Shown piece after piece: positions 13,031 to 61,617 of a stretch of DNA of 64,000 nt. The notes under the pieces were generated by a model. That model did no database searches. It worked only from the letters and a program-made list of their open reading frames with translations, and was not told where the DNA came from. Source of the stretch: Chlorokybus atmophyticus (Eukaryota > Plantae > Mesostigma and Chlorokybus algae); the NCBI GenBank assembly GCA_009103225.1, contig RHPI01000101.1:18031-82030 (forward strand). The letters are read 5' to 3'. The position numbers and the translations under genes were made by a program. Numbering within the stretch: the first letter of the stretch is position 1; every line of letters starts with the position of its first letter.

Positions 13031-13096
<66 letters not shown>

Positions 13097-21094: not shown

Positions 21095-21739
21095 CTTCCA
21101 CACATGCAGCTGCGCGAGAGCATATTCACACTTATCCAGTGAGCGAGGCCCCGATGCTTATAACCACGGCGTTGTCGTGAAGATAGCAGCAAGTCACCCA
21201 TGCAATACGGCACAAGGCTTGTGCTCATCATGGTGCTCCCACATTAGTGGCGTTGCTTCGCAGCTTGACGTAGCCACCTCCTCCTCGCCATGTTGGTAAG
21301 TTGTGCTGGTCCCTGATGCTACTCAGTCAGGTGCACATGCCTGTTGGAATTGCTAGACCCAACAAGACCGTAGGGTATGCGGTCATGACTGCGCTTGTGT
21401 TGTTCATTGCACGCGGGTCGTGTTCAGGATTGCCTTGACAAGTATGCTGGAGCGAGCTGATGGCACGCTCTGGTTTTCCTGCCACAGCCCTTGAACGCCC
21501 AGGCTGTCTACTGCATGAAGCAGAAACTCCCAATGGCGTCGTTGCCAAGCGCTCTGTGCTACAGTGGCACTACAATCATTGCAGAGCCTTTGCCAGCACG
21601 TTGAGCAAAGCATGCACCCCGCCCAGTGTCATGCTGCATACCATGGCTGTGACGTGTACATGTGTCTCGGGGCAACGGCGGTAGCGCTATACCTGGTTCA
21701 CAGCGTTTTAATCTTCAAACATCGCATGCAGGCATGCGC

Positions 21740-21774
21740 GCGCTCTGCGTGGGCATGCACGTGTGGCACATGCG

Positions 21775-21857
<83 letters not shown>

Positions 21858-22782: not shown

Positions 22783-23227
22783 TGCTAGCAGCGCAGCGCT
22801 GCAGGGCCAGTTCAGAACTGCGTGAAAGTCACACCAGCGTTTTATCAAGGCAGTCAGCCAAACGGTGCTATTGTTGTGCATGGCATTCATGCACCCCTTA
22901 ATGTGGGCGGACACACTGCCGCATGAAGGTGAAGCCCGCTTTGCAGGGCAGATGCTGGATAAAGTAAGGCTTACGCGGAGGCACATGTCCGTAATACGTA
23001 TACGTCGTGTCAAGTTGATGTGACGATTTCACTGTGGCACAGGCATGCTGTGTGGTGAGAAACGACGAGCACAGCGCCGACCAAGCTATCATCGGGTTAT
23101 TCTATTGGTACTTGCACATCAGAACTGGTTCAGCGACATTAGCCTTTTTTCATCATGCACACGGGAATATGTTGCCCCAGCTGAGCGAGCTGAGCGAGCT
23201 GGGAGGTGCAGTGCAGCGCTCCAGGTG

Positions 23228-23278
<51 letters not shown>

Positions 23279-23314
23279 NNNNNNNNNNNNNNNNNNNNNN
23301 NNNNNNNNNNNNNN

Positions 23315-23401
<87 letters not shown>
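22707..23401. repeat. Inverted microsatellite pair: (AG)n 22707-22780 and (CT)n 23231-23401 (N gap 23279-23314)
   Basis: Direct reading. Confidence 0.95.
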
Positions 23402-23405
<4 letters not shown>

Positions 23406-23538
23406 CAGGGTGCGCATGCCTGGCGGATGTATGAGCAAGCCAGCAATAATGAAACCAAAAGAATGCTGTACAGAACACGAGTCAAGCTATCGACTCTCTT
23501 CCCTACCAACGCCGCTACTATTATGCAATAATTTTGTG

Positions 23539-26500
23539 TCATAGTTGCGGCGTGGCGGGTACGGAGTAGACCGTCTTGACCTGCACCGCGACGGACCCCA
23601 TCAGATCCTGCATCAGCGCCAGCTTCATGTTCAGCGCGTGCTGCATCTCCGCCACCTCGTCTTCAACCTTTACACAACACCCACATTAGCATCACCCTCC
23701 ACATTGAAACAACCAACACACATGATGCAACCCATCACCTCATCCAGCTTGCCATCCACCCCAACCCGCTTTGCCTTCTCCCCACCACCCTTTAAGGCTT
23801 GGTTCCTTTGCAGACTCGAGCTTCGCCTCAACCTTAATCTCCTCTCCACACGCGAGTTGGAATCTTGCCTCGCAAGCTTAGGCTGTGGCACAGATTCACT
23901 TGACTCTTTGTTCTCCGAATTACTGTTATCCTTGTCCTTGGTATCCTTGTCCTTGTCCTTGTTGGCCTTGAGCTTGTTCTCCAGCTCCACCTCCCGCTCC
24001 GCGAGGTCCTTCAGCATGAGTGTCATCTCGTCGGCGTCAAGGATCTCGTTGGCCGTCACGTCGTACTTCTTCAGCAAGTCTTTCGGACCGCGACGGAGCA
24101 ATAACTCATACGCAGCCGCGTTGCCCTTCAACTCCTGTACGCAGATTGTGTGTATGTTTAGTGCAGACTTGCTGACATGTGCACTGTGTGCTGTGATTGG
24201 AAGGTTGCTACTGTGTGTGCGCGCCCGCGTGTGTGTTGTGCATGTTGTGTCCATCGCAAGTGCGTGTGCGTGTTGTGCATGCGCATGTGTGCATGCATTG
24301 TGCGTGTGGTTTTATGTGTCATCAACACATATATCCTCCATCCCACCTGCTTGATGGCGGACTCGTTGATAAGGTTGTCCATCCACGGCACCATCGTCTT
24401 CAACCCCACTGCAGGTTGCACCTGCACTCATCACCCATCCCACCCAACCCCCTCCATCAGTCTCTTTTTTACCCATAGCTGTTGAGCACAACCCCACATC
24501 CCCACCTTGTTCTTATTTCTTCGCAAGAGTGCCAGCACCCGCGCCACGAGCGTCTCCCTCAGATGCGAGTAGAACTGTTTGGCTTCCTCCGTCTCGCGCG
24601 TCTTGACGTCCGCGAACGAGTCCGCCACGATCGCGAGGAACATCGACAGCAGCACGAAGAAGCAGAAGAAGACGAAGGCGAAGAAGAGGAGAGGGGTCAG
24701 GATGCGGTTGGCGAGGACCATCTCGCCGTAGTCGAACTTCGTCAACAGCATCTGTTGACACATAGACTGAGTTGTTATACATGTCTGTAGCGCGACTGGG
24801 GAGTCGTGTGAGTTGTGCATGGTTAACTGCATCAGTATGTGCTAGACAACGTAGTGTGTGGTGGCAGAGGGTTTGTGCACTGGCAGTACTTATGTTGGGT
24901 ACACACAGAAACATGCGGTAAAACACGCATGCACGCGCGCATGTGCATGGGTTTGTGTGCGTGCTTGCATGTGCGCACGAACATACACACACACGTGGAC
25001 ACCTGCATGCATACACCAACGCACGCATGCACACGTAATCACTGATACATCTGCGCGCGCGCTCACACACACACATACACACAATCCCGCACACATACAA
25101 GTGTGGTTCTGTCCACTTGCCTGCATGAGTGAGTCGAAGGTGGACGAGAAGCTTCTGAACCCGTATATGAACGGCGAGTATATGGCATAGTACGCCGACG
25201 CAAACCCGAGGAAGAATATAGTCGCCATCACCGTGAACAAAAACAGATCAAAGGCGCTATCCGACACCGTGAGAAATATCGAGTCAAACCGCGGCACGTG
25301 CATGAGGTACTTGAAGAACCGCACGTATAGGAAGATGAAGTTGAGACCCGACACGTTTAGTTCCTGCGTGGCGAGGAAACCCAACGCGGGGAAGTCCAAG
25401 TAGGATACGCCGTCCGAGTTGTAGCGGAAACCGTTGAGCTTGCGCTGCTGCTGGATGCGCATGACGATCATGGCGTAGATTGTGGCGAAGTTGAACCAAG
25501 TGACCCAAGTCCACCTAGACCTGAGAGTGACTGTCTCAACAATCTGTTGTATACACGCACACGCACACACACATAAGTACACCCGCCCCTTTTGCCTTAC
25601 CGCAGGTATTGTTTGCCGTATCTAAATATGCACGATATCTCCTCCATTGTGTGAATCACCAGCAGTACCACCACCACAATCTCGATCGCAAGCACCAGGT
25701 GGTCATAGCCCGTCACATACCTGCAAGACAGAGACACTCAACACACATTTCTCTCCCAATCACATTTCAAAACAACTCACCGGTACAGTCGGAACGTGCG
25801 CACGAGCGTGGACGAGTACAGGTTGCCGCTGGGCGGGATCTCAAAGAGTAGACGGATTGTTGTGAAGAGGTTCCAGCTGGGGTTGAGAAGGGAGATGTCG
25901 ACGATGACGGCCCGCGTGTGACCATCGATCCAATGCGACGCCTGTGGCAACGGACACAATGCAGGTTCTGGTTCATGCATTCATCTGAGACAGCTGTGTG
26001 CCTTTTGATACAGATTGCGTGTATAACCGCATGTGCACGTGCGCGCACACAGAAACAGAGACGCACATGCATACGCAGACACAGGCGTGTACGCGCACGT
26101 ACGCATGCACACAAACGCGCACGTATCACACCCACCCACCTGCAGCGCATTGAGTTGTGTTTGCGCGATGGCGAGCGGGTCGCAGTTGGCGCTCACGCAG
26201 GCGTCATCACCGCACGCGCACACCGCGCACGCCAACATCGTCGGGAAGGGCGTCGACGGCAGCGCCGTGCACGTCGCGTTGCAGCTGCTGGCATTGAAAC
26301 GAGCCGGGACCTGAAGTGGAGGATTGTGTATTGAGGGGGTTGAGTGGGGTGTGGGGAGGTGGGGTGGGGTGGGGTGGTTGTGTGGGGCTTACGGTGAGGG
26401 TAGAGCAGTTGGTTGGGAGGGGAGGAGGTGGGGTTGGGGATAGTGGTGGAGATGAGACTTGCAGCAGCCGCCTTTGAGTTGGTGCTGTGATACAGGCAGT

Positions 26501-29500
26501 TAAGGCACAGTAGCACCCGACACGTGAAGAACGTCAACACCAACCGCCCGGTCTTAAACAAGAACGTATGCAAACAGTCTGGACAATGAATGGACAACCA
26601 TACGCAGACACAACTGAACGCGACCACACACATGCATGTACGCATGCACACAACCCTGTGTGTGCGCGGGCGCGCGTGCACACACGCACGCGCGCACGCA
26701 CGCATACTCACACACATATGCATACGCACGTAGATACGCGCACGCATGCACGCACATTCATCCACCCATCCCCCCCCNNNNNNNNNNNNNNNNNNNNNNN
26801 NNNNNNNNNNNNNNNNNNNNNNNNNNNNNNNNNNNNNNNNNNNNNNNNNNNNNNNNNNNNNNNNNNNNNNNNNNNNNNNNNNNNNNNNNNNNNNNNNNNN
26901 NNNNNNNNNNNNNNNNNNNNNNNNNNNNNNNNNNNNNNNNNNNNNNNNNNNNNNNNNNNNNNNNNNNNNNNNNNNNNNNNNNNNNNNNNNNNNNNNNNNN
27001 NNNNNNNNNNNNNNNNNNNNNNNNNNNNNNNNNNNNNNNNNNNTTTATTATCTTATTGAGCCCCCCCCCCTTCTCACCTGTCCTAAACCAGTTGACCTGC
27101 ACCTGCACCGTCCCCCCCACCAGTCCCGTCTCATTCCCCACAACCACCAACGCCGGCGAGAAGTCCACGCTCTCCGTCACATTCCCGCTCCCGAGCGCGG
27201 CGTAGTAGGAGACGGTTATCGATGTGGTGGACGTGGCGCCGGGGGAGATGGAGCCGGAGGTGGAGGAGGGGTGGAGCCAGGAGGAGGAGGAGGAGGAGAG
27301 GGAGGTGAGGGAGGAGGAGGAGAAGGACCAGAGGACTGGGAGGAGACCGGGGTTGGAGAGCCTGGGGAAGAGTGTGTGGGTGGGTACGTGCGTGCATGTG
27401 TGCGAGCGCGTGTCTGTGTGCGTGCATGTGGGTGGCAGTGCGTAGCTTGGGAGGGATGAATGCACAGTCGCGCTTACTGGAATGTGACAGTCGTTTGGGA
27501 GCCGACGCCAATCAGCGTAGCTTGCAGCAACACGGAACTCACCGGCTCAAACGAAACTGCCACACAACCCAATCACAATCAGCCCACCCACTCACCCCAC
27601 CCACCCCCACCCACGCACCAGGATCCACCATCGCCAGTCCCGGCGCATACACCGGCGGGTTCGGCGGCGGCATTGGCGGCGGTGTCGGCGGTGCCATCGG
27701 CGGCATCGGCGGCGGCGGCGTCTCCCCATCCTGCACCGCGAGACACCGCGCCACGGCTTGCGCGAGGACGGTTTGACAGCGTGATGTGATCGAGTTGTGA
27801 AGGATGGTAGGGGAGACGTTGGGGAGGAGGTCGAGGACGAAACCGTCCTGGGGAGTGGACGAGTGAGGTGTGATGCAAGGAAGTGGTGAGTTGAAGTTGG
27901 AGAGTAATAATAACAACGAGTGCGTGACAGTGCACACACCTGCGAGTAGCGACCTTGTTGACCGGCTTGGAAGAACCAAGCGGACGTGTTGAGGTCGGAG
28001 GAGCTGCGCCAGACGTACCTGTGCCAAGCGTAGGAATGGTGTTGGGTAGTAGTATGGCATTCTATGCTTGGGGGTCGCTGAGCAGTGTGCATGGCACGTA
28101 TTGGTGCAGTGACCATAAACACCCATACTGTGTGTAACGTTTGCGTGTGTGTGCATGTGCGTACGTTCCATCTCCCCACCCCCCACTCACGGCAGCGTGA
28201 AGTTCCCTCCCGCGCCATAGTCATGAGGGATGTCCCCCCTATCCCTTTCCCCCATGGCGTAGTCGGCGGTGCACGACGCGTCCGGTGCGCCGTACACCTC
28301 GCGGATGCGGGAGGGGACGGGACACGAACGCGAACGGGAACGGAGCTGGCGGAGGCGGAGGGCACCGACTACATTGGCCTGGTGTGGGAGGAGCGAGTGT
28401 GTTGGATGTCTGTGGTGGTAGGGGGTGAGTGATGTTGTTGTTGGCTTACTTGGCCGAGGATTTGGAGGCGCTGCGAGGGGATGAGAGGGGTGCCCGAGGA
28501 GGGATCCGTTTGGGGGTAAGTCAGGGAGAGGAACGTGCCGTTCAGGTACTGTGTGTAAAGCCAGGGGTTGGTTACACAACAATCACTGAGTGGAGGTCAT
28601 CAGAGAGAGAGAGTGTGTGCGTTTGTGGCTCTGCTGCTTACTGTCCAGAGGGCGGAGGTGTTGGTGATGGCGCTCGTGTCGTACGTGGCTGTGGAGTTTT
28701 TTATTTCATCAACAGAAGCAGTGAGTATCACGTATTGTTGTGTGACCATCATCATCATTAACAGAGGTGTGTGGTTTGTCTCTCACCTTTGGCGTAAGAG
28801 TTGATGTAGTACTGGACGCTGCCAGGCTTAGCCGCAAACACAACTGAGTAAAAGAGAGCACGCAGGGCAATATGAGAGACAAAAGTCGTTGTGGTCCGGT
28901 ATGTGGATGAAGAATAAAACTGCCTAGAGAGTGTGAGGTTTGCGTACCAATGGAGAACAAGATCACGAAGAGGAGGTACGCTCCCGCACCGACGTACAGC
29001 TGTGGTTTTACATAGACGTACAATGAGTACGTTGCAGGTTTTAGAACATACGTTGGATGCGAACGGTGAAGGAAGACTTCTTCTACGCAGACAGTCAAAG
29101 CGCATTGCATGGTAGGGATAGTTGTAGATTGTGACATACAGCTAGCAAGTGTTGGGTTCAACATGTTATTCACGTGTAGCAGCAAGCAGTTGGAAAAAGA
29201 AATCTTGAGACGCGATATGTGGTTGTCCTCCAAGAATGCTGGTTACTACCTTCAACAACGCTGTCACAACACAACTATGGCATGGTTGCTTTATGTCAAA
29301 GCCACCAACAGGAGACACCACCTCCAGAGCTATGCACACCTTCTCTGTGTGTGCGAGTGTGCGGTAAACAACTTGGTTTGAGTTGATCCTGATTGTTGTA
29401 CACAGTATGCAGATTGAGGACTGACAATAATTGTTATTCCGACACATGGCAATCTCACACCTGCGCTTTCTCCTTGATGACCTTCAGCTTGCCCACCGCC

Positions 29501-29553
29501 AGCCGCTGCCTCGGCGCTCCCCGGTTCATCCGCATGATATGCCCTCGCGCCAT
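23539..29553 (-). CDS. PKD2-like: Polycystin-2 / TRPP-like cation channel, about 20 exons, one region lost in the N gap 26778-27042
   Basis: TOP-domain motifs NVVGALRLRQLRSRSRSC and WIDGHTRAVIVDISLLNPSWNLFTTIRLLFEIPPSG. S4-S6 motifs FLYVRFFKYL...FDLFLF...FSSTFDSL and NRILTPLLFFAFVFFCFFVLLSMFLAIVADSFADVK. EF-hand-like YDVTANEILDADEM and a coiled-coil tail. ATG at 29553; stop at 23541-23539. The 5'-most exons are tentative. Confidence 0.9.
26778..27042. other. Assembly gap (N run) flanked by C-runs
   Basis: Direct reading. Confidence 1.
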
Positions 29554-29629
29554 AGTGACAGAGATGATCAAATCACACCTCCCTCGTGTCCTGGCCTGGC
29601 CTGGCCTGGCCTGGTGGGGCCTTCCGGCT

Positions 29630-29664
<35 letters not shown>

Positions 29665-29953
29665 TGGCCTGGCCTGGCTTGGCCTGGTGTAACACACTGC
29701 AGCACCAACAAGAGGTCACGTGACGAGCTGCAAATGACGCTGAGATCGTCATTTGCGTTACGTGTTCTCCCGTAAGCAGTTTGGAGAGCTGTCCGATCGG
29801 CAGCAAGGTAGCAACGTGGACAACCTTTGTGTCCTCCGATGTAACTATGCTCAAGGAAGTCGTATCTGGCGACAAACGTATTCTAGGTCTATTCTTCCAA
29901 GCCCAGGCCAGGCTATCAGGCCAGGCCAGGCCAGGCCGGCTGCCGCTGCTGCC
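29554..29953. promoter_or_regulatory. Shared divergent promoter/5' UTR region with mirrored (CCTGG)n and (CCAGG)n arrays and (GCC)n
   Basis: Only 400 bp separate the opposing ATGs (29553 on -, 29954 on +). CCTGG x5 at 29590-29614, (GCC)n at 29630-29662, CCTGG-like at 29664-29687, CCAGG array at 29903-29937. Confidence 0.65.
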
Positions 29954-32409
29954 ATGCTGCCGCCGATCTCCGCCGCCGGCGGTGGCCTGCGCGTCAGTTG
30001 GAGCGAGCCTGGGCCCGCCGCTATCGAGGAGGACGGGGAGGAGGAGGACGACAACAATGACACCACGAAGGAGGCGGCGGCGGATGATACTGAGCCTAAG
30101 GCAGGGCAGCGGCGGAGAAGAAATGTTGATAGAAACGATGTTGATACGCATCTTATTAGGCTGTTGGGAAGGTCTCAGTCCGCTATGGGCAACTACGCTT
30201 GCTACCGACGCAGCGCTGGTGCTGGCCAGTGCAGGAGTAGTAGTAGTAGTGGTATGGGAGGTGGAGCCAAGTCCTTTGAGGAGGAGATGATGCTCAGCCA
30301 GGCTCAGAGGAGAAAGGGTGCTGCAGAGCAAGCAAAGGACGCCCTTGAGACGGTAATATAAAACTCACAATAAGGTATCAATGGAGCTTGAGACGCATCA
30401 GAATCTGAACGTTGCAGTGCACTGCTGTAATCGTGCCAAGACGGAATTTGTGGTATATGTTGACAGCCTTACACGCGTATCAACTCTACACAAACTTGGC
30501 AGTTGCATCAATGTGGCTTTAGCGCAGGTTGCGAGCCCTCCGGTATTGTACTCACATTGCATGGCTGTTGTTTGGCTCGCTAGCTTGCATAACACGTTCA
30601 CACGTTGAACAAAATCGTTTGACATGCTTGGTCATCGGCGTTTGCACCCCAAAAAGACCAGCGCACAAACTGAACACATAGACACATGTAGTCATACGCT
30701 GAGTTCGTGTACATCCTATCTGATGCACACCACTCACACACGTACAGGACCTCTCCTCCCCGCGCGCAGCCTGGCCCCCCAACACCTCCACCTTCTCCCT
30801 ATCCTCCTCCTCCTCCTCCCCCTCCCCCTTCTCCTCCACCCACCCTCTCTCCCCCTCCTCCCTCCTCTCCTTTGGCCTCCCCCCCTCCTCCTCCTCCCGC
30901 CTCTACCGCGCCCTCCGCGTCCACTCCGCCGGCTTCCACGAGTCCGTCCAACAGCTCATCTCCCACATACCCACACCCTCCACCCGCACACTCCTCCTCA
31001 CCCACATCTGGCATGCTTACGAGCAACTGTGGGACTCAGCCCTGTGCATCAGCTTCCCGTTGGAAGTGAATGAGATGGCGAGGGAGAAGGTGGCGCTGAG
31101 GGAGAGGGGGGAGGAGTTGGGGAGAGAGGTGGAGAGGTTGAGGGGGGAGTTGGGGAGGGAGAAGGAGGCGAGGGAGAGGGTGGTGAAGGAGGCGATTGAG
31201 AGGGCGGTGAAGGGGAGGGAAGAGGAGAAGAAGGGGAAGGGGAGGGAGAGGGAGCTGGAGCGAGTGACAACGGCACTTGAGGTGGGGGAGGATGTGGTGC
31301 ACACAAATGCACACACACACGGACACAGGGGTGCACGTACGCACACATCACTCAGATGACACACATGCACGCGGGCAACCACAAGCACACACAATTGGCC
31401 ATTCGCATTGGATTGATTGCTGTTGTTGAATAGAGGGCGGAGGAGCGGGAGGAGAAGCTCAAGGCAGCTTTCAAGGCTCTCAGCGCCCGGGCCGCAAAGC
31501 AGGTGCGTGTACGGGGCACCCGTGTACATGCATGAATATCTACAACAACTAGCTGATGGTTTCCCCATTTGTTGGAAGAGTGACGAGTTGGAGGCAGCCA
31601 GTGCTGGGCGGGCTTTTGCAGAGAAGGCCGCAGCCGCAGCACGCGAAGAGCTGTCAGTGTTAAAGCGGGAGTCAGAGACACGTGTCAACGCACTTGAAAC
31701 AGAACTGAAACAGGTAAGATGCATATGTCACAACGCAGTTCTGAGCGTTACGTACACGCATGCGCGCACGCACTATCTTCTTCCGCTGTCGCAGGTCGAA
31801 GGCGAGCTCGCTTCGTGCCAGCTGGCACTCAAGCAGACCTCCACGGCAGCGGAAGCGCGCGTCACCGCGGCTGAGGCGGCCTCCGGGAAGGCGGAGAAGC
31901 TGGCGGAGGAGGCGACGCAGCAGGCGAAGGACCTGCGGAAGTCCATCGCACTCCTAAACGGTACGCATGGCGATGATGCAAAACACACGCACACGCACGC
32001 ATAGGTACGCACGCACACGCACACGCACGCACTCGCATGTCTACATGCCGCGAATGCGCGCATATGTGCGTGCGCACATGCGCATGACTGCTCATGCACA
32101 CAGAGACAGGAGCCCGTGCACACGCACGTATACGCAGACACCTTCAGAGACTGTTTCTCACCCCTTTCAGGTGACCTCAACTACAAGCGCCAGCAGTTGG
32201 CGAAGGAGCAGGCAGCCGTCGAGCACGGTCGCCTCCAGCTCAAGGAGGCCTACGCCCACTGGGACAAGGAGAAGGCCAGAGTGACCGAGAGCCAACGGAC
32301 GATCGAGGAACTGAATCGAACGATAGAGGGACATGATGGGGAGGTGAATGAGGTGAAGAAGCAGCTGAAGGAGTCGAGACAGAAGGTGAGTGAGTGTTGG
32401 GTGTGTGTG

Positions 32410-32441
<32 letters not shown>

Positions 32442-35400
32442 CGTGTGATTCTGATAGTGGCTTTTGTGTAGGTGTTGATGTTGGAGCGAAATGTTAAAGA
32501 CCTTGAGGAGGAGCGTTCCTCCCTCCAATCCAACGAGCACCGTCTCTACGACTGCCTCGAGCGCAAGCGCGCCAAGAAGCAGCGCCACAAGCGTGCCCGC
32601 GAGGACCTAACTCGCACCCTCTCACTCATGGAGGACGCCGCCCGTGATGCCAACGCCCGCGTGCTGGACGCCGACGGGGAGGTCGCTCACGCCCGCGCGG
32701 AGGTGGACAAGGCCAAGGAGGAGGCGGAGCAGTTGGTGAAGGAGGCGGAGGAGAAGGTGCGTGAAGTGGAGAGGTGCTTGGGGCAGGCGAGAGTGGAGAT
32801 GCAGGCGGTGCAGGCGGCGAGAGATGAGGCGATGTGGTCGAGAGTGGATGTGGAACAACAGCTGAAGGAGGCCAAGACGCAAGCTGCGGAAGAGCTCAAG
32901 TATGCACTTTCAGCGTGTGTGTATGGGCATGTATTAGTGGGCATGCGACAGGAGCATTGCACAATGCATGTTGTTGCTGATGACGATGATGTCGATGTTG
33001 TTGGTATCGTTGATGAGGATGGTAAGCATGAACGCGTGCGCAGGAAGGAGCAAGAGTCTCGCGCGCAAGCGATTACCGACCTGGAGGCCAAACATGCAGC
33101 AGAACTCGCCGAGCTTCAAGTGCGTGCACACAAGCACACACACGCATGTGCACTCGCACACAGGCACGCACAGACACCCACTCGCACACAGGCCTCCCTG
33201 GACCTCACCACCCGTCTCCTCTCCGCCTCCACCCTGGAGCTCTCCCAATCCAACGACCGCGCCCGTCGCCTCGCCCGCGACATCGAGTCCTCTTCCCGTC
33301 TCTCCGCTTCGCAGGAGGCTGAGGTGGCTATGTTGACCCTGCGTGTGGCCGAGGCCGAGAGGGAGGGGAGGAGGGTGGCGGAGGAGCACAAGGAGGAGAT
33401 GGTTGGGGTGAGGGAGGAGATGAGGGGGATGAGGGAGGTGATGGAGGATAGGACGGCGGAGGTGAAGGAGTGCGAGGGGAAAGTGAAGGAGGCGGAGAGG
33501 GAGGTGGCGAGGACGAATACGGAGCTACGGCTACTGCAGAACCAGTATGTGGAGTTTAGAACTCAAGCATTTCATACACGCGCACGCACACGCACACGCA
33601 CACATAGCGTGCGTGCTGCGCTGGTTTGTGCACAAAGCTTGCACATACATTGCCACACGCGCGGTTATGCACACGCACACTCACCCACCCACCCCCTTCC
33701 TCCCCCAGGTTGCTCCAACTCGAGGACTCCCACGCCCGCAAGCTGGACCAGATGCGCACGGAGTCCGCCGCCCGCGCCACCGCACTCAACGCCGCGCAGG
33801 AGGCCGCCCGCGTGGCGACGGCCGCGAAAGACAACGCCGAGAAGGAGGCCCTCCAACGGCTGAGGGAGGTCACTGAGACACGCGACCGCGCGGACCGGGT
33901 GGAGGAGAGGGCGGAGGGGTTGGAGGAGGAGTTGAGGAAGGCGCATGTGGTAATGTGGCAGTGTGAGGGCATGTGTGTACAGGGACTGATGTGTCAGGAA
34001 GGATGTGGGGTTGAATGAGAAGTGTGTGTGTTGTAGGATGGAAAGAGGATGGAACTTGAGCTGCGAGAGATGGAGGGAAAGCTGAGGGCAGCGACGGCGA
34101 GTGCCACACAACTTCAAGCTGAGGTGCGCACATATGTACGCATGCGAATCCGCACGCAGACGCACCCACGCATACACACATGCCCGCTTGCATTCATTGC
34201 AGGTAGAGAGAGTGCGCCACACGTTGGCGCTGGAGCACAACTCCACGATGGCGATGTCTCGCCAGGTGGCTTTATCTCAGCAGCGCTCCGCACGTGCAAC
34301 AGTCCACTGGCTGACCTTACGCACACGCACCCTCAAACAAGCCCTGTCCCACGCGCGTAGCGACTTCGCACGCGCGGCCTCACTCGCCGTCAAAGACAAG
34401 GAGCGCAGCACCACGCAAGTGTCAATGCGAGCACAAAGCATCGTCGCCGCCGCGCGTGTCCTTGCCGAAGACATGCGCCAGGCCCTGATTGTTGTTACTA
34501 GTGAGGGTGGGAGTAAACCCAACACGCCCGACACAACAACCCCACTCAAACCCAACAGGAGGCCTCCCTCGGGTGCGATGGCCACAATGGAGTCCGCTGA
34601 GGCTCTCGCATCTGCCTTGGCCAACATCGGTTACCCCGAGGACGCCTTCAAGGACGTCGAGAGCGCTGTCGGTGAGGTCCGCAACCACGCGAAGGCGTGC
34701 GCCAACCACATGCAGATGCTGCATAAAGCCAACATTAACTTAGAAGGAGAACGCGCAGCTGTGGCGGGAAGCGTCTTACGCTTGGAGAAAGAGATTGAAA
34801 CGATCAGTACACGACTCATGTCAATGGATAACGACAACGACACGATGGACGATACAACCAACAACAACTTCGCTCGAAGCAAAGCGGCTTTGGCTCTCCT
34901 CCCCTCCCGCATACACGCCCTCGCAAACACCCTCACTATCCCACTCGACACCTCCCCACTCCCCCCTCCCACCACCACCACCACCACCACCACCACCACA
35001 ACAACAACAAGTTCCACATCAACGACATATGAATCTTACATCACCCTCCATCGTAAGCGTCTGGATGCCGCGGAGACCCTCGCGGCCGTATCCGAGATGG
35101 AGAAGGCGTGTGCGCGCGCGTTCGTGGAGACGAGGGAGGCGAGGGTGGCGCTGGAGAGGGCGAGGAGGGAGGCGGAGGAGGCGAGGGAGGAGGGGAGGGC
35201 CAGGGAGCAGGAGGGGAGAGAGAAGCAGTCGGAAGGTGAGTGGAGAGGTTGTGTTGGGGGGTTTGGGAGGGGGAGTGATGGTGTTGATGTTGATGTTGTG
35301 TGCGTGTGCAGAGGCGGTGTTGATGATACGGAAGGGGATGGAGGATATTCAACAGGCGTCGGAAGAGATGATCACACAGGTATCCCACACACACGTAGAT

Positions 35401-38400
35401 GTGCACGCAAAGTCGCACATGCGCCAATGTGCACACGCACCAATGTGCACACGCACAGGCAAAAACACACATGTACGCACACACATGCGCGCTTGTGAGC
35501 ATGTGTTTGCACACACGCACACGCACGTACTCACGCACGCATACACACACACACACACACACACACAGCAGGTGCATGATCAAGCACGTGAAGCACGTGC
35601 TCACGCAGTTGTCACAATACAACTCCTTCCCCACAGGTGGAGCAACGCTCCCTCACCTCCCTCTCCCTCCTCTCTTCCAAGCTCTCTTCCTCCCTCTCCT
35701 CCCTCCACACCCTCTCCCTCCTCCTCCTCTCCACTCTCTCCTCCCTCTCCTCCACCCGCGCCGCCCACAACACTCTCCTCGCCACCCACAACACCGCCAT
35801 GGCCGAGGTTGACGCCCTGCTTGGGGAGATGGATGATGTGAAGAAGGAGAGGGATGTGGTCAAGGAGGAGAGGGATGAGGCCAGGAAGGAACGGGAGAAG
35901 GTCAAGGAGGAGAAGGAGGAGATGGAGATGCAGGTGGTGGAGGGGAAGAAGAGTGAGAGGGAGGCGGCGTGGAAGGCGCAGGAGGCGGAGGAGAGAGCAG
36001 GTGAGAGTGTGGGTGTGGGTGGATGGGTAGGTGGGTGGGTGGGTGGGGTGCGTGTGTGTATGTGTCGATGAGATGTTTTCTTGTGTAGTGTCGGTGGGTG
36101 TGGCAAGACAGGAGGCTGAGAGGGCTGCGGCCCTTGCGAGCGCGTTGTTGGAGTCTGTCAAGATGCAGGTACGTTGCTGGTGTTGTTGTTGCTGTTGTTG
36201 TTGTTGCCAAGCTGTGTCTAGACGCTCTGTGACACAAACGTATGTGTGATGTTGCGTACGCAGTTGCAAAGCGAGAAGCTCACTTCAGCATCCCTCAGCC
36301 AGCAAGTGTCGCAGCTCAAGACAACACTGGTATACAGACATACACACTCCCAACCCAACCTCACCTCTCTCCCACTCGGTTTCCCAAACCTGTATACACC
36401 ACTCACACACACACACACACACACAAACACGTTTGCAGGACGACAGCGTCCCCATCTCTGACCTCATCCGCACCCAAGACGCCCTGACGGCCGCCACCTC
36501 CGAGCACGCGGCCGCGCAGGAGGCGCTGGCTGCGCTCAACAAGGAGTACAACGGCATGGCCGCCCAGCTTGAAGCGGAGAGAGTGAACGTGGCGGAGGTG
36601 GAGAATGCACTGGCGGAGGCGCAGTACAAGGTGGGTGAGAGGGTGGGTTGGGTGTGTATATAAGGTGTGCGTGCGTGTGGGTAAGTGTTTTTGCATATGT
36701 GCGCGTGTGCAAAGGTGTGCTTCTGCGCACATGCGTGTATAGGACACTGTGTCTGTTTCATGCATTATTTGCGTGGTCCCCATTTGTAGAAGTGTTGTAT
36801 GTGCGTACGCGCCGTGTATGCACGCACAGGCACACACGCACGTGTACTTGACTTGCATTTGTGATGAAACGACCACTTGCGTGTGCAACAAGATGACTTG
36901 ACTTTACATTGTTGTCTTCAGGTGACCACATTGGAGTTGCAGACCCAAACCGATGCGCAAGCCCTCCAGCGCGGATCCGAAGCAGAGATATCCTTACGCT
37001 CATTAACCGACGAGCTCACAAAAACAAAGGTAGTAGAACGTTGATCATTGTACCACATCTCGTTGGGCTTGATTGTGTAACACATTATCACACACAGGAG
37101 GAGTTGCGGCTCGCGCGCATGCCGACTTTACGCCAAGCGTGGTGCGGTACGGTTCCGACATCTCAGTCCTCCCCGTCGATATTGCTCCCGCTGCCCGTGC
37201 TGCGCGCGGTGATATCGCAGATATACGCCGCGAAGCTCGCCGCGGGTGCCACGGCCGAGAACGCCCTCGCCATGCGGGACTTTGTGTACAACGCGTTCAT
37301 GTACAAATTTGGCGTGCGGGCCGTGGCTGAACAACACCTTCACGGGTAGGATGCGAGTGTGGAATGTGGTGTGTGGTGGTGGTGCGTGTGACAAAGTCGT
37401 GTATGTGCATAGGTTGTTGGAAGCGGTGCGGGAACATAGGTCCATCTCACTGTTTGTGGCGACTTTCGGGGACCTGTGCGGGGCTGAACTGGACAAAGCG
37501 CTGCCCGATGACGCTACCGGCTTCTTTACACTGGCATGTCATGCTATTAGCCTTCTAGCCGTCGGCAGCTGTTGCACAAGCAACATGCGCGCACGCACAC
37601 ACACACACGCACACATGCACTCACACACATTACTCCCATGCAGGTTCTGTCCAAGGTTGTCCAGTCTGCCATTGCCAGCATCAGCGCCGAGTCCGCCACC
37701 GAAGGCGACGTGAGGCTGCCGAAGACTCTCCCCGTGGCGACGGCTGTGACCATCATGAGCGACATCTGCAAGCTCGCCGTCGGCGTGGAGCTCGAGGACT
37801 TCAACCGCAAGATCAACGCTGCCGGGGCGGATGTGGCCACGGACATGTTCATGTCAGAGGTGAGAAGTGGGGTTGTAGTGACAAGTCATTTATGTTTGGT
37901 ATGCATCACCTTGGCTTGAGTGTGTGGGTGTGTGTGTAGGCGATACAAGTGTACGTGGTCGATCGGGAGAATGCGGCTCAACGCATAGCTCAGCTGTTTG
38001 ATGATGCTGACAAGGACGGGAGCGTGTCGCTGACCTTCCCCGAGTTCTCCGGATTGTGCTCAACGGTAAGGACTTTGCCAGACACGGTTCACGACACACT
38101 GAGCTGTTGTTGTTGCTGTTGTTGTTGACTCTTGTGTCAGGTGTATGCTGGCGTGAATGAGAGGGAGAAGAAGGTCATGTTCCGAGAGGGACTGCTCTTG
38201 TCGCGTTCAGGGACCAAAGTGGCAAGGGAGGCCTTTGTCCAGGTGCACATGCTGGTTGGTGGTTGCTTGTCAGTTGGAGTACTTGTGTATCTGTGCCATA
38301 GCCGAGGCTCTTGTCGCTGTCCACAGGTGGCCAGAAACCATGGGCTTGGATGCATACCCTGCCTGGCGCAGCCGATACAAACCAATGCAAGTGGACATGT

Positions 38401-39010
38401 AGTCACTTTTGTTTATTTGAAATTCACTTCCACGCATGCTTGTGGTAACCTTGTGTCCACCTCCACCCGCCACGACAGGCTCTGAAGAAGACAAGCGATG
38501 CGGAAGAGAGCGAACTGTTGGAATTTTCGTGGCGTGCGATGCAACCGCTTATATTAAAGCACGGGTGAGAGAGTTGTTACACGTGCGCAGCGCTAAAGCA
38601 TAGGGATTACGTTGTATCGACGAGCGTGTCAAAACAGGTCGGCAACAGACAAGGAGGCCCTGGAGCGATGCAAGGTGCTGGCGGAGGCTAAGTACCAACC
38701 GCACACAGCATGGCAGGTATGTGCTTGGTTGACATGACCAAGTAGTGGCAGCTTGACTGGAGTCTTACCAACCTGGTCTTGGTGCAGCTGTACAGACAAG
38801 TTATCATGGACTGCTACGCTCATGCGGAAGCAGAAAGGTTTAGGACAAGGTATGAGATTGACAATTAATTGACAATTAATTTGCCGGCCTGAATATTTGT
38901 ACTGCTCTGTAGCGTTAGGATGACGGCATATTGTTGCTTGTGGCAGGGAGGAGAGGTTGAACTCTGTGGGTGTCCTTGCGTACTGCACACCCACACTAGT
39001 CGCTGTGTAG
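29954..39010 (+). CDS. Very long multi-exon coiled-coil protein with a C-terminal EF-hand; probably ciliary or basal-body
   Basis: In-frame exons such as 30748-31281, 32472-, 33192-, 35637-36000 and 36439-36630 encode heptad-rich E/K/R/A/L sequence. The C-terminus has MRDFVYNAFMYKFGVRAVAEQHLHGLLEAV and the EF-loop DADKDGSVSLTFPEF. Stop TAG at 39008-39010. The ciliary role is inference. Confidence 0.8.
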
Positions 39011-39199
39011 TCACTTCAGCGTATACAGTAAATTCGGCTAAGTGACAGCAAGCATCCAGAGCCTAGAGAACTCTGCATGACAGCATGCGAGATAGCGAGT
39101 AGGATCATCTTTGAACACTGTATATACAATGGCGCAGATACATGTCCATACAGCACCTTCGATGGTTGCAATGTGCTACAGCTTCTACCACTGCAACTA

Positions 39200-41795: not shown

Positions 41796-42257
41796 CCCTC
41801 CACTCGCATCCGCCGCACAGCCAAACCCCCCTCCCCCAACTTCAACCCCGCTGCCCCGGCCAACCTCCCCAACCACACCTCCGCCACAAAACCCTAGGTC
41901 GTACAACTTCCGCATTAGGGTTGTTGGGCGGACCTCTTCCTTCCATTCCAACCTCCTGTGGTCTCGGAAGGTCGTCCTGAACGTTCGCTCTTTCATAACA
42001 AAAGCAGCAGACTCGCCCACTAAGCAGGTGACACGTACACGCACATGACGTTGAGAAGTACGGTACGCGCGTTACACCTTGTGCGTCAGCAATTTGGTTG
42101 TTAGCGCATCTCTGTGGTCTGATAGATCGCTTGGAGTGTTTCAGGTACTGAAATACTACAGCTATACCTGAGGTATCCTGTAGTGTCTCGAATACAGGCT
42201 TCAGACACTGCGTTCAGCATGTCGCTAAGCACATTGGTGCATGTTGGCGGCGGCGAC

Positions 42258-54800: not shown

Positions 54801-56855
54801 TTAATAAGCACTTGCAACGTTGCAAGTTCTTGTTGATGGTGCTGCTGTCGGCTATGCTTTGCTTCGCGTATTGTCGTTGCCACCTCTTTGGCATGCATAT
54901 GAGGGTGAGTGGAGTGGCATGCAAGACAGTCATCTTGGTGGTGCTCGTTGCATATGCATATGCCCATGTATAATTGCACGCGCACAACTGCAAAGTTACA
55001 CTGTAGCTTGGCAATTGATAGTGGCACTACTTGGGACATGTAATTCGGGTGTATGCACAATCACCCAAGTGTGTCCTATGGGCTGCAGACTTGTGTGGTC
55101 AGGATACAGCTACCACTGCAGTTGCCAGACCTCAACGGCAAGAGTTGGCAGGTTTATCTATTCATATAGTCTCATGGTGACCTGTCATAGCGAGCTGCAA
55201 AATATGCGGAATGACCGCACACGCCACCTGCGATACTGCACACGCACATACCTCAGGCCACACGTGTAATGAAACGCACCTACACACACCTGTCTACGCC
55301 TTTGTGTGTGAACTCCATAATACTCAAAGGTAATGTACTTCAAAGTTACATCTTGTTCAAGCACACAAGCAACGCCGTGTTGCAGTATGAGTGCGCGCAT
55401 GCTGCAACGCCAGAATTGATGTTGTGGATACTAGCGCCGATTGCAACACAAAGTCAGCGATCAATTGTACTGCCATTCCGGCACATCTGTTCACAAGGCA
55501 TCATTGCCAGACTTGTCGCAACCGTCACGCACTACTACTTATGATGATTGGAGAGCATAGCAGCCACCAACAGTTACAGCTGTGTGGGGCATCGTTATGC
55601 TCAGCCAAGACTTCTGGTTGCATCCGTACGCACCGTAGGCCAGTAAGTCGCCCGTTCTTGTGCTAGTATGTTACCGCATGCGTAGTGACTATCGCAGTCA
55701 CAGTTGCCACCAACACCAGCATGCCATTGTGAGTGGTGTGGCAACAGTGTCGCGCGTGCGTGCGCATCTGCCACACGCACATGCCCAGACAGCGGGCGCT
55801 CCCACCCACCCACAGACCAGTGTTGTGGGCGCCCTACGCGTTCGATAGCTCCATCCCCGTTCTCAGTCGTATCCCGTCCCGTCCTGTCCCGAACGCCTCG
55901 TGCACTGCCGACTACGCTGTGGCGGCCATGGGTGAACGGGACAGGGGGGATAACATATATGACTATGGCGCTGCAGCCTCCTGCGTAGTCCCGAGTTCCG
56001 GGAATCTCACGCTGCCGCAAGCTGCTTCTTGAGAATGAGTGAGAGGGAACAGGGTGTGATGGGGTCGTGGTCTATGTGCGTGAGCACACATGGAATTGTT
56101 TGCGTGCAACAGATATGGGTTTGGTGCAATGGAAAGCGTAATTTTGAGCTCAGCTGACGGCACATACACATACATGCATGCACACGCAGACACGCGCACA
56201 ATAAGTGCTTGTGGTTGCAGCACTCACACATATGCTATCCACAGCATAGTCAGCACTTGTATCCTATGTGTTGGTGGGTACCACACAAACACACTTATCG
56301 TACACGTACACTGTATCAAGCCATTCACCATGCACAACACGACTATAGAAGCCACCATTTCACTGCTCAGCGAGCCCCAAGCAGCACATGCTATAGTGCC
56401 CAACACCAATACAGCCCGTTACCCACACAGCCCAACATATCTTCTACTCCTCCTGCAGGTACGTGTGGCGCAGCTCCTCCGACCTCAACACCAGCGCCGG
56501 TGGTTCTTCCAGGCCGGTCGTCACGGTCGCTACCCGCAGGTGCTGTATCCTTATACCTGTATCAGTACAACATCACCCCAAGAAACCCAACGCTTCCGTG
56601 CATCACACTTCCTTCGCTCCCCAAGACGGTTTGATCACGGACCTCCTCCCCAACGTCTCCCCCGCCGTTCTCCACACCTCCATCTCCACCCGCTATCAAA
56701 CCCTAAGCCGGGCACGCGCCATACAGAGGTGGGTTTGGCAGTGCAGGATGAAGCCACGACGCCGCCGCCACAGCCGCCGGCAGCACCGCCGCCGCCGCCG
56801 GTGTATGCGCGGGTGCTGGCGCTGATGGAGCCGGGTATGGCGTGGGTGGGATGTG

Positions 56856-56883
56856 GGGTGGGGGGGGGGGGGGGGGGGGGGCN

Positions 56884-56922
<39 letters not shown>
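56856..56922. repeat. Poly-G run with an internal N
   Basis: Direct reading. Confidence 0.95.
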
Positions 56923-56923
<1 letters not shown>

Positions 56924-59023
56924 GAGTGAGTGAGTGAGTGAGTGAGTGATTGTGAGTGGGTTGTTGGCAGTTTTGTTGGAGCCGGCGAGTTCCGTCTTGC
57001 TGCAAGCCACGCTGATTGGCATAGAGTCGCAGAAGACTGTCACACTCCTGTAAGCGCAACTTACTCCCAAGCTACCCGCCAGTACCTATCACGCACATGT
57101 GTCTGTGCGTGCGCGCGCGCACGCACATACACACGCACACACACACCAACCACGCCCCCCCCGCATCCACTGCTCTCCCCAGGCTCTCCAACCCCGGTCT
57201 CCTCCCCGTCCTCTGGTCCTTCTCCCCCTCCTCCGTCACCTCCCTCACCTCCTCCTCCTCCTCCTGGCTCCACCCCTCCTCCACCTCCGGCTCCATCCAA
57301 CCGGGCCGCACATCCACAATAACCCTGCGTGTCTCCTACTACGCTCGGGAGCGGGAATACTACGAAGACAACCCCACCTTCTTCCATCACCAACAATCGC
57401 TCTGCACTCAACGTAAGCCCCACACCACCACACCTCACGATCATCATCACCACATCACATCACAATAAACCCCTTTGACGCACAGTTCTGCATTTGGGTG
57501 GCGGCTTGGTTCAATGCAAGCAACTGCAACGCGACGTGCACAGCGCTGCCGTCGACACCGTTCCCGACAATGCTGGCGTGTGCGGCGTGCGCGTGTGGTG
57601 ACGACGCGCGCGTGAGCACCAACTGCGACCTGCTGGCCATTGCACAATCTCTCAACTCAATGCGCGTGTGGTGACGACGCGCGCGTGAGCACCAACTGCG
57701 ACCTGCTGGCCATTGCACAATCTCTCAACTGATTGCGCTGCAGGTGCGTACAAGTATGCGTGCGTGTAGGTGGGTGTGGACGTGCGCGTGCATGCGTGCG
57801 CGCGCGCGTGTGACTATGTCTGTGTGCATGCGTGTATGCACACAGACGTAGACACATAGACACGTATGCACACAACCTGCCATAGTGGATGCGCATGTCT
57901 ATGTGCGTACACTACGTGCATCCACACTGTGTTGGGAATTACAGTGGCCTTTCTTGCATGCATGAGTTGAACCGGCTTTTACCCAGTCTATTGCACAGGC
58001 ATCACATTGAATGGATGGGTACACGAGGGACGTGACCGTCGACATCTCCCTGCTCAACCCGAGCTGGAACCTGTTCACCACAATTCGGCTGCTGTTCGAG
58101 ATCCCGCCGAGTGGCAACCTGTACTCGTCCACCCTCGTACGGACCTTCCGCCTGTACCGGAACGAGCTGTTGGTTGTGATTTTGATTGTATGGTGGTTAG
58201 AAGAGTACATGTCGCAAATGTCCTCTTCTTGCAGGTATGTGACAAGTTGCAATCACCTGGTGCTTGCCATTGACATTGTTGTGGTGATACTGCTCGTGCT
58301 GCACACGACGGAGGAAATATCCTGCATCTTCAGATACGGCAGACAGTACTTGCGGTAAGGAAACCGGGGCAGGTGTGCGCACATGTGCATGTGGGCATGT
58401 GTGCGCGCGCATGCGCGTGGGTGCAGGCGCGGGTGTGCGCGGGTGTGTGCGTACACATGTATGCATGTGCACGTGCGCACACACTGGTGCTTGGGTGCAC
58501 GTGAGTGTAAACGTGTACAATAATGAACTATTCGGTCTCTCAAGTCGCGGTGGACGTTGGTTACTTGGTTCAACTTCGCCACAATCTACTAGATTGCGTA
58601 ATACGCTAAGATCGCAATGCGCATCCAGCAGCGCAAGCTCAACAATTTCCGCTACAATTTGACCGCGTGTCCTACTTAAACTTCCTCGCGTTGGGTTTCT
58701 TCGCGACGCAGGAGCTCAATGTGTCGGTCTCAACTTCATCTTGCTCTTGTGCGATTCTTCAAGTACCTCATGCACGTGCCGCGGTTCGACTCGATATTCC
58801 TCACCGTGTCGGACAGCGCGTTCGACCTGTTTCTGTTCACTTTTATGGCCAATATAGTCTTCCTTGGGTTCGCGTCGGCGTACTATGCCATATGTTCGCC
58901 ATTCATGTACGGATTCCGAAGCTTCTCGTCTACCTTCGACTCACTCATGCAGGCACGTGAACGTGAAGAGTTGCACGTGCGTGCGTGCACGAGTGTGTAC
59001 GCATGTATGTGCGTACATGTGTA

Positions 59024-59099
<76 letters not shown>

Positions 59100-59100
59100 T
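59024..59100. repeat. (GCGT)n tetranucleotide microsatellite in a pseudogene intron
   Basis: Direct reading. Confidence 0.95.
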
Positions 59101-61617
59101 GTGTGTGTGTGACGCAAGTACACAGACAGCTGGCCTTTACATTGCGTACATTACATGCCACCGTTGTATACTTTCTACAACACTGTTGTTCGGACTGTGG
59201 AAGCAACGGAGCTGCTCCTCCTGCAGATGCTGTTGACAAAGTTTGACTACAGCGAGATGGTCCTCGCCAACCGCATCTTGACCCCTCTTCTCTTTTTCGC
59301 GTTCGTGTTCTTCTGCTTCATGTTGCTATCCATGTTCCTCGCGATCGTGGCGGACTCGTTCGCGGACGTCAAGACACGCGAGACAAAGGAGGCGAAGCAA
59401 TTGTACTCACACTTGCGCGAGACGCTCGTGGCGCGGGTGCTCGCACTGTTCGCTCGTGGCGCGAAGAAACAAGAACAAGGCGGGGACAGTAACAACGTTA
59501 TTTGGGTGTAAGTGAGACTGATGAAGTGGGGTTTGTGTGGGCTGGGGTGTGTGAGTGCAGGTGCAACCGGCAGTGGGGTTGAAGACGGTGGTGCCATGGA
59601 TGGACAACTTCATCAATGAGTCAGCCAATAAGCGGGTGGGGTGGAGGATATGCATTGTGTGCGTGTGTTTTGACGACACATACAAACACACGCACACAAT
59701 GCATGCACACACGCACATGCACAACACAAACATGCACTTGCGATGGGCACAGCATGCACAACACACACACTCGATTGCAACCTTCCAAGTACGGCACATT
59801 GTGCAAACCGCCGGCAAGTCTGCACAAAAACAATATAACACTCTGCGTACAGGAGTTGAAGGGCAACGCGGCGGCCTACTGGTTGTTGCTGCGACGGGGG
59901 CCGAAAGATCTTTTGATGAAGTACGATGTGACGGCCAATGAGGTCCTCTATGCCGACGAGATGGATCTCATGCCGAAGGACCTAGTAGAACGGGGGGTGG
60001 AGCTAAAGAACAAGCTCAAAGCCAACAAGGACAAGGACAAGAATGAGGGCGAAGCCTCTGACACACACAAAGATTCAAGTCAACCCGCACCACAGTCGAA
60101 GTTTGCAAGGCAAGACTTGAACTCGCGTGTTAAGAAAAGATTGAGGCGGAGGCGGAGCTCGAGTTTGTAAAGGAACCAAAAGGGTGGTTGGGACAAGGCT
60201 AAACGGGTTGGGGTGGACAGCAAGTTGGATGAGGTAAAGTTGGAACGACTTGTTTGTTGACTCAATGTGAAGGTGGTGCAATTGGATGATACCCGAACGC
60301 AGGTTGAGGATGAGGTGGTGGAGATTCAACACGCGCTAAGCATGAAGCTGGCGCTTATGCAGCACCTTATGGGGTTTGTTGCGGTGCAGGTCAAGATAGT
60401 GTACTCCGTGTCTGCAACGTCCGTCGTGGTGCAGGTCAAAACAGTGTACTCCGTGCCCGCAACGCTGCAACTATGACACAAAGATATTGCATCATAGTGG
60501 TAGCATTGTTAGCGCAGAGACTGAAGAGCTTTGCAATAAACTCTGTACTCCAATGGTTCATTGCTCGCGTAGCTCTCTGTCTGATTGTTAACTCGCGGCG
60601 TCATTGTGAGGCAAGCATCCGAGGATATGTGGTCGACGCCAATTATACGGAGATCTAAGTTGCGACCTATGGAAATGTAGTTCATCCCCATGAGCCGCGG
60701 CACATATGAGTATAGTCCAACCCGAATAAGTGCATACCATTGAAAATTGCAACGCATGGCTTTGTCAATTAGGCCATTGTAACAATATTCGCTACCATGA
60801 CTCTAAGAGCTTGTGTATGGCTTATTAATGCCTCATAAGCTCTTCTTAACCTTCTCCACATTAACCGGCATTACATTCAACCTAGTTTTAACCGCAATTT
60901 AAGTTGCACAGCTTGGTCCTTCCTGACCGGCAGATGTTGCTCGCGTCCGGCTATGACCAGCCACATGACGTTACCGGTCATGCAGCGTAGTTATTTGCGA
61001 CGACTTGCCACGTTGCCGCGAAGAGGAGCGACCCTCTGCACCGACTCAGTTGACCTTACCTGACAGTTCATTATTACCCACTCTCGCGCATCTTGCGCCC
61101 TGTGGGATTGTTCTCGCAACCTTTACAGCTCCAATTGCCAATGTAACTGAAGGCTTAGCCGACTAGGCAACGATAGCAAAGGTCGCTACCATGAGAGGGT
61201 GTGTATTGCCTCATAAGCCCTTTTTAGCCTATTTCATTATGCACTCATCGCATTGATGCAGACTCATGAAGTGCACAAATTATGCGCCCGTTTTAAGTGC
61301 ATTGATTATGCACTTAGGCTTGGCATACATGATCCATAATCTCAAGTTGATAGGTTTACTATCGTAATCAAAGTACACTTCTATTGTACGCTACCTGTAA
61401 TACAAGCGTGATCTACCTGATAAGTGCATAAACACATTAGGTTGGGCATACCATAGAATGCACTTATTAATAAATGCATCTGTTCTCAACGCACAGGTGT
61501 CGGCCTTGAAGACGTTGGTGACGGTCAAGTTTATGCACTAAACGCAGATAGTTTATGCACTTATCAATTATGCAGATATTGAGGACAGATGCCCGGGTTC
61601 AAGTCGACGATGTCTTT

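Follow-up and report, generated by a model that had tools for sequence, protein, structure and literature searches.

Gene models at the locus

We analysed a 64-kb window from the alga Chlorokybus atmophyticus (contig RHPI01000101.1, positions 18,031 to 82,030); all coordinates below count from the first base of this stretch, which has a G+C content of 51-52% and contains five N runs. Two of its genes, one for a PKD2-like cation channel on the minus strand and one for a coiled-coil protein on the plus strand, share an unusual composition. On the sense strand of both, C-rich, G-poor domains alternate with G-rich, C-poor domains, each about 150-450 nucleotides (nt) long. We call this alternation the wave. 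It runs through coding exons, and there it determines codon choice. The genes and exons concerned are listed here.

23548..28970, minus strand: PKD2-like cation channel gene (Pfam PKD_channel; tblastn with relatives)
28191-28378, 27940-28003, 27778-27847, 27619-27730, 27078-27361, 26140-26310, minus strand: exons included in PKD2
25781-25941, 25660-25720, 25118-25543, 24506-24751, 23739-24134, 23597-23667, minus strand: further exons included in PKD2
26778..27043, no strand: assembly gap inside a PKD2 intron
30748..36630, plus strand: coiled-coil gene, modelled extent (16 curated exons, one stop-free frame, 15/15 introns GT-AG)
30748-31281, 31434-31502, 31579-31713, 31795-31960, 32171-32385, 32472-32899, plus strand: coiled-coil exons 1-6, curated
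33044-33119, 33192-33544, 33709-33949, 34037-34123, 34203-35235, plus strand: coiled-coil exons 7-11, curated
35312-35379, 35637-36000, 36089-36168, 36264-36329, 36439-36630, plus strand: coiled-coil exons 12-16, curated

The gene models were built in-house from a curated exon chain and a trained gene model. It could be argued that the wave is an artefact of wrong exon borders, the C-rich stretches being intronic pyrimidine tracts, or of an assembly error. One modelled intron of the coiled-coil gene (32900-33043) invites such doubt: its 3-base periodicity is like that of coding sequence (chi-square 29, p=5e-5), one frame stays open across it, and the exon borders around it may be wrong or splicing there alternative. 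The remaining evidence opposes an artefact. Each large coiled-coil exon has a single open frame that spans its C-rich and G-rich parts, and 3-base periodicity is present in both halves of every exon of at least 150 nt (p 0.05 to 7e-11), being strong in the C halves and continuing in one frame into the G halves. It is missing from four of the five introns tested. The C-rich exon parts are therefore coding sequence and not long pyrimidine tracts. Moreover, the 16-exon chain is free of stops with GT-AG introns throughout, and homology spans whole PKD2 exons. An unspliced DNA contig of run X1 is identical to the window over 35577-35721, and a contig of run X2, from a relative (90-97% identity, presumed RNA), joins ~35994 to 36088, matching intron 36001-36088. 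We consider an artefact very improbable.

Contigs of run X2 match the coiled-coil gene at 34512-34733, 35045-35216 and 35893-36164, again at 90-97% identity. A close relative thus has this gene, with the part of the long exon in which C-rich gives way to G-rich sequence, and apparently expresses it. The product has no significant match to a Pfam family, and a search restricted by protein length found no homologue of the 344-residue coiled-coil exon.

The closest PKD2 relatives, about 45% identical, come from Mesostigma, Chlorokybus and Nephroselmis; tblastn with these placed the conserved PKD2 exons. The exon that ends at ~27078 has a minus-strand donor (CAG/GTGAGA) some 33 nt before the assembly gap, and the far flank of the gap is GT-type and intron-like. 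No reading frame used here crosses 26778-27043, and the closest switch in composition (27190) is ~145 nt off. Any open reading frame that includes the N run of the gap is meaningless, and two skew crossings inside it were excluded from the switch counts. A long tract of CT/GA dinucleotides (23212-23421), broken by a 36-N gap at 23279-23314, lies beside PKD2 at its 3' end.

Codon choice flips within exons

The 100-nt profile of GC skew over 23-38.5 kb swings between about -0.9 and about +0.9. The two directions of change are not equivalent: by a strand-independent step measure with 100-nt arms, C-to-G steps above 0.6 occur at 392 positions against 73 for G-to-C, and the C-to-G steps are also sharper. 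In the coiled-coil gene all nine exons of at least 150 nt begin C-rich and G-poor and finish G-rich and C-poor. The same order, read in gene sense, holds for six of the seven PKD2 exons of that size. An initial annotation had pointed to this flip in a set of exons, each of which does run from C-rich to G-rich in gene sense (30748-31281, 33192-33544, 35637-36000 and 36439-36630 in the coiled-coil gene; 24506-24751, 27078-27361 and 28191-28378 in PKD2). Two of its exon ends need correction (33546 to 33544, and 27060 to ~27078). Its counts for the first coiled-coil exon were exact: positions 30781-30840 contain no G in 60 nt, and 31141-31200 contain two C in 60 nt. That exon provides the most extreme pair of stretches.

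30748..31040, plus strand: most extreme C-rich, G-poor coding stretch; third base C in 75/89 codons of the 5' half
31051..31281, plus strand: matching G-rich, C-poor coding stretch; third base G in 70/89 codons of the 3' half

Within one exon, then, the third codon base goes from ~84% C to ~79% G. The switch is also plain in the codon counts, where CTC falls from 57 before the switch to 7 after it, TCC from 61 to 3 and CGC from 32 to 8, while AGG rises from 2 to 37. Pairs of codons that differ only in the third base follow suit (GCC:GCG 40:10 to 25:55; GTC:GTG 12:6 to 6:39; GAC:GAT 26:3 to 9:9). The mid-exon synonymous switching described in the initial annotation is thus borne out by the counts.

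Four-fold degenerate sites, at which amino-acid composition is controlled for, give the clearest view. In the coiled-coil gene the 5' exon halves have 57 G, 248 C, 26 A and 45 T at these sites and the 3' halves 136 G, 64 C, 32 A and 18 T, so that G:C moves from 57:248 to 136:64 (odds ratio 0.11, p=4e-29). Over seven PKD2 exons G:C moves from 39:89 to 72:39 (p=2e-7). A lack of skew at these very sites had been named beforehand as the finding that would speak against the idea; the skew is present in both genes. Because four-fold sites flip, the force acts on nucleotides and not on the protein, and the claim that such a force overrides codon choice holds.

Amino acids follow the wave where the protein is weakly constrained. 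Codon positions 1 and 2 of the coiled-coil gene also shift, so that exons start rich in S, L, T and P and end rich in E, R, K and G, as had been noted. In PKD2, conserved residues that can be aligned with orthologues show no amino-acid shift in the predicted direction. Protein constraint evidently resists the force, since the conserved PKD2 amino acids are unshifted and only synonymous sites follow the wave. Codon and amino-acid use vary with distance from the exon end, and a nucleotide-level force picks G or C at synonymous sites and, where the protein is tolerant, picks amino acids too.

Could the protein be the cause and the nucleotides the consequence? On this view each large exon would encode first a linker rich in Ser, Leu and Thr and then a charged helix, both built from CTC/TCC and GAG/AGG triplets that expanded by slippage, and the repeat unit would set the codon bias. 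The S/L/T/P-rich C halves and E/R/K/G-rich G halves suit this idea, as do the triplet-like runs and an ACC run that encodes poly-Thr. The same synonymous flip, however, is found in the non-repetitive, conserved transmembrane exons of PKD2, by which the idea is largely refuted. In addition, the skew runs on into the flanking introns, the exons have no sequence similarity to each other, and slippage does not predict a fixed order of C before G. We regard this explanation as improbable. The lack of mutual similarity also rules out that the exons are copies of one duplicated module, and the large exons therefore count as independent cases.

Geometry of the wave

We placed a switch at the zero crossing of the 80-nt skew between -0.3 and +0.3.

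31041, 32208, 32664, 33319, 33826, 35077, 35812, 36538, no strand: coiled-coil C-to-G switches, all in exons
24635, 25119, 25797, 26162, 27190, 27652, 28280, plus-strand coordinates: PKD2 exonic C-to-G switches
36001..36088, plus strand: GT-type short intron, GC skew +0.88
32386-32471, 33950-34036, 35236-35311, plus strand: further GT-type short introns (GT-type range +0.77 to +0.90)
35380..35636, plus strand: CA-type intron with a GC skew of -0.29, or -0.40 for the 3' half alone
33120-33191 and 36330-36438 (skew -0.70), plus strand: further CA-type introns

The phase of the wave is tied to gene structure. C-to-G switches are exonic in 15 of 16 cases and G-to-C switches intronic in 11 of 14; the five intronic G-to-C switches of the coiled-coil gene all lie 3-8 nt from a splice junction, four of them at the donor. 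The sign of the skew alternates 15 times in 5.9 kb of this gene, and the pattern is the same in the plus-strand and the minus-strand wave gene, which agrees with the reverse-complement symmetry claimed at the outset. We had been led to expect an exon-centred flip that repeats every 0.5-1.2 kb. The first expectation was too loose: C-to-G change-points in the coiled-coil gene lie 116-241 nt upstream of the donor whether the exon measures 166 or 1033 nt. The second was about right in scale, the spacing of switches being 347-1259 nt, and it is irregular.

A metaplot in gene sense places a C-rich zone around 3' splice sites (intron side to about -160, exon side to about +150) and a G-rich zone around 5' splice sites (exon side to about -180, intron side to about +60). 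Exons are CT-rich and then GA-rich, whereas introns are CA-rich and GT-rich. Skew in introns is about as strong as at four-fold sites. Across junctions it is correlated, more closely at 3' splice sites (r=0.74) than at 5' splice sites (r=0.44). The blocks do spill into introns, as the initial annotation held, although some splice sites lie in the opposite context. Short introns are wholly GT-type or wholly CA-type, and only introns of at least 150 nt run internally from G-rich to C-rich. Small exons likewise sit within one zone, and the wave is not one cycle per exon. Because a short intron or small exon is a single zone, several 3' splice sites have G-rich and some 5' splice sites C-rich surroundings. 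In the 1033-nt exon a strong C block, at 34885-35056, is found right next to the G block and 680 nt away from the 3' splice site. The notions that a G-free zone leaves one AG only, or a T-free zone one GT only, were ruled out by reading the sequence.

The window has 15 G-quadruplex motifs, 14 of them in wave genes. The coiled-coil gene has four on its sense strand (31233-31252, 35185-35216, 36011-36048 and 36633-36652), each at most 50 nt from a donor.

Known exon-end skews are modest, purine-rich at both ends and reach only some tens of nucleotides in from the exon end. Splice-related skews of this kind were reportedly studied by Parmley & Hurst and by Willie & Majewski. Purine-rich exonic splice enhancers cause codon and amino-acid skews at exon ends (Wu et al. 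2013, PMC3787667). The wave could be an extreme form of these skews, produced by two protein-bound sets of splicing enhancers, one G- or purine-rich at 5' splice sites and one C-rich at 3' splice sites. The two zones of the metaplot, the fairly constant length of the G zone before the donor and the donor-proximal G-quadruplex motifs all accord with this explanation, and so does the general likeness to the skews of that work: synonymous and amino-acid use depends on distance from the splice site, and pressure at the level of the pre-mRNA beats translational codon preference.

The details fit less well. Four 3' splice sites of the coiled-coil gene stand behind GT-type introns (+0.77 to +0.90) and two donors precede CA-type introns; in the long exon the C block is found beside the G block and not at the 3' splice site; and three neighbouring genes, introduced below, splice without such a context and show an opposite trend. 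Zones of 100-300 nt that extend into introns are several times longer than known enhancer zones, and the swing in third-base composition of the first coiled-coil exon and the restriction to some genes are equally unlike enhancer skews. Finally, composition is opposite at the two exon ends here and not purine-enriched at both: 5' exon parts are pyrimidine-rich (C 0.45, T 0.19), and only the 3' parts are purine-rich. Two enhancer sets are an unlikely explanation.

Which genes carry the wave

Within the 64-kb window the wave is restricted to two genes and one pseudogene. The standard deviation of 100-nt skew is 0.47 in the coiled-coil gene, 0.37 in PKD2 and 0.34 over 56.0-60.5 kb, as against 0.17-0.22 in all other regions of the window.

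55800..60430, plus strand: inverted duplicate of PKD2, a pseudogene with in-frame stops and frameshifts that keeps the wave
38629-41996, minus strand: PP2C gene, wave-free (Pfam, own gene model)
42258-44246, plus strand: acyltransferase-like gene, wave-free (Pfam, own gene model)
44882-47707, minus strand: CRT-like transporter gene, wave-free (Pfam, own gene model)

The pseudogene shares ~77% DNA identity with intact PKD2, introns included, exons having diverged by ~15% and introns by ~25%. At aligned sites its skew nearly equals that of the intact copy, the divergence being too small to tell decay from maintenance. The intact gene has an excess of C only in the exonic C zone (34 versus 17), again at low divergence.

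The PP2C, acyltransferase-like and CRT-like genes (38629-47707) have a skew standard deviation of 0.22, conventional splice-site flanks and almost no total skew. Along their exons four-fold G:C moves from 99:70 to 44:93 (p=4e-6), a weaker trend in the opposite direction. This trend was not made by training, since the gene models were trained on C-to-G exons. The wave is therefore not a general exon-definition rule of the genome. The exon/intron definition code suggested in the initial annotation does not, as a general code, survive these three genes, nor the splice sites that lie in opposite context.

Two observations concern other parts of the window. Downstream of the coiled-coil gene, 36909-38250 on the plus strand has in-frame open, spliceable coding segments, perhaps of the same gene, that show no wave and match no Pfam family. 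The region 3646-21844 is a direct tandem duplicate of ~9.45 kb (3646-10519 = 13098-19971, 99.985% over 6874 bp; 10932-13096 = 19671-21844, 99.6%). Single-N positions, 13097 and 21861, lie at or near its block ends, and the duplicate may for this reason be an assembly artefact and not a recent duplication.

Comparison with known systems

No description of such a wave was found in the collection of literature that we searched, a statement that holds for that collection only. Each of the known families that we name (enhancer skews, structured teleost introns and strand skews) fails in at least one defining feature here.

GC and TA strand skews associated with transcription or replication (PMC10030826) do not change sign from one end of a transcription unit or replicon to the other. 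Like them, the wave makes G and C unequal between the strands at neutral sites, being present at four-fold sites and in intron flanks, and intronic G over C goes with T over A. Unlike them, it changes sign every few hundred nucleotides, in phase with exons and independently of gene orientation.

This likeness raises the possibility of a local strand-asymmetric process of mutation or fixation that has no function, for example self-reinforcing skew domains in genes under heavy transcription, brought about by single-stranded DNA or R-loops. Exons would be filtered by protein constraint, and under weak constraint the skew would grow into low-complexity repeats. Several observations accord with such a process. 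Skew in introns is similar to that at four-fold sites and continuous over junctions. Reverse-complement symmetry is a feature of processes at the DNA level; GT-type and CA-type introns are expected from CpG decay on either strand; and the PKD2 pseudogene has retained the wave. Conserved PKD2 residues follow it at synonymous sites and not in their amino acids, and G-quadruplex motifs are concentrated in wave genes.

Other observations resist a mutational cause. The deamination signature fits the GT- and CA-type introns, but four-fold sites show a transversion exchange of G for C with few A or T, unlike known deamination asymmetries. A blind process should not know gene structure, yet C-to-G switches are exonic and G-to-C switches intronic. 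The wave is absent from three neighbouring genes, which lie on both strands, and its irregular period fits neither nucleosomes nor replicons. A mutational process phased by chromatin or replication, the second suggestion of the initial annotation, is for these reasons of scale and base exchange not established. Mutation or fixation without function remains a tentative explanation, nearly as likely as selection on the pre-mRNA.

Structured introns of teleosts offer a different parallel. Lin et al. 2016 (PMC4691745) describe (AC)m-(GT)n introns in which AC and GT tracts occupy opposite ends of one intron and co-occur 'across introns but not exons'. The likeness is in the complementary CA- and GT-type tracts next to splice sites and in the restriction to a subset of genes. 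It ends there: our short introns are wholly of one type, the partners flank an exon, and the complementarity enters coding sequence. Members of that family are expected to have a predicted helix across the intron that is more stable than controls, and to be spliced independently of U2AF2; predicted intron-bridging duplexes here reach -53 kcal/mol against -50 for random genomic and -64 for non-cognate pairs.

Complementary flanking introns are also known to promote exon circularisation. In the predicted fold described below, 180 pairs likewise join the two introns around an exon, but the complementarity of these introns is compositional and not that of an inverted repeat.

Proposed selection on the nascent pre-mRNA

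We propose, as the likeliest though still tentative cause, that the nascent pre-mRNA of a subset of genes is selected for alternating complementary domains, for structural exon definition or for avoidance of R-loops. A single domain would be unable to fold alone, one partner of the G-C pair being missing. Neighbouring domains would complement each other, a CU-rich domain matching a GA-rich one in exons and a CA-type domain a GT-type one in the introns alongside. This would let the transcript fold up into long, register-free helices with the exon at their centre. Such a collapse would bring the 3' splice site of an exon close to its downstream 5' splice site, and could stop G-rich RNA from re-annealing to the template.

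Several findings count in favour of this proposal: skew that crosses junctions, independent exons, coding sequence in both halves, restriction to certain genes and the C block that adjoins the G block in the 1033-nt exon. Complementarity in both dimensions (exon halves CT then GA, flanking introns CA then GT) is a further point. Selection also fits better than deamination because the change at four-fold sites is an exchange of G for C with no gain of T or A. Duplexes between the C half and the G half of an exon are predicted at -110 to -130 kcal/mol, compared with -50 +/- 12.5 for random 120-nt pairs. In the predicted minimum free energy fold of 6.1 kb of pre-mRNA, 1066 of ~2050 pairs lie within an exon and the 180 mentioned above join introns that flank an exon.

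There is also a good deal to set against selection for pairing. The strength of the exon duplexes is explained by composition (mean z -0.9 versus shuffles that preserve the composition of each half), and the intron-bridging duplexes, at -53 kcal/mol, do no better than random genomic pairs (-50) or non-cognate pairs (-64), with a mean z of -0.17 versus shuffles. The pairing of G-blocks with C-blocks put forward in the initial annotation is accordingly not established. Predicted accessibility and pairing probabilities have no feature at splice sites. Helices so stable should persist in the mature mRNA and hinder translation. Nor does the pairing idea explain why it is the C-to-G change, and not G-to-C, that falls in exons. 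The pseudogene keeps the wave as well, though its divergence is too small for decay to be expected. The A/T skew at four-fold sites had been considered as evidence of pairing and was dropped, since it could just as well stem from transitions of the dominant base.

A more specific form of selection on the pre-mRNA is doubtful but worth stating. A subset of genes may use structural exon definition, in which a large exon and the ends of its introns would form a register-free CU:GA and CA:GU helix with the splice sites side by side. Under that same doubtful proposal, the structural requirement would be strong enough to prescribe which synonymous codons are used and, where the protein tolerates it, even the amino-acid sequence.

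Implications

Whichever cause is right, the assumption that codon bias is uniform along a gene would break down in wave genes, and with it the gene finders, codon-usage models and tests of selection that rely on it. If the cause is mutation, the wave would reveal a novel strand-asymmetric process of C/G exchange that is phased to exons. If it is selection, these genes would be an unusually strong case of a signal at the RNA level that overrides coding sequence, with protein composition following, and synonymous recoding would allow a direct test of how coding is traded off against splicing or RNA structure.

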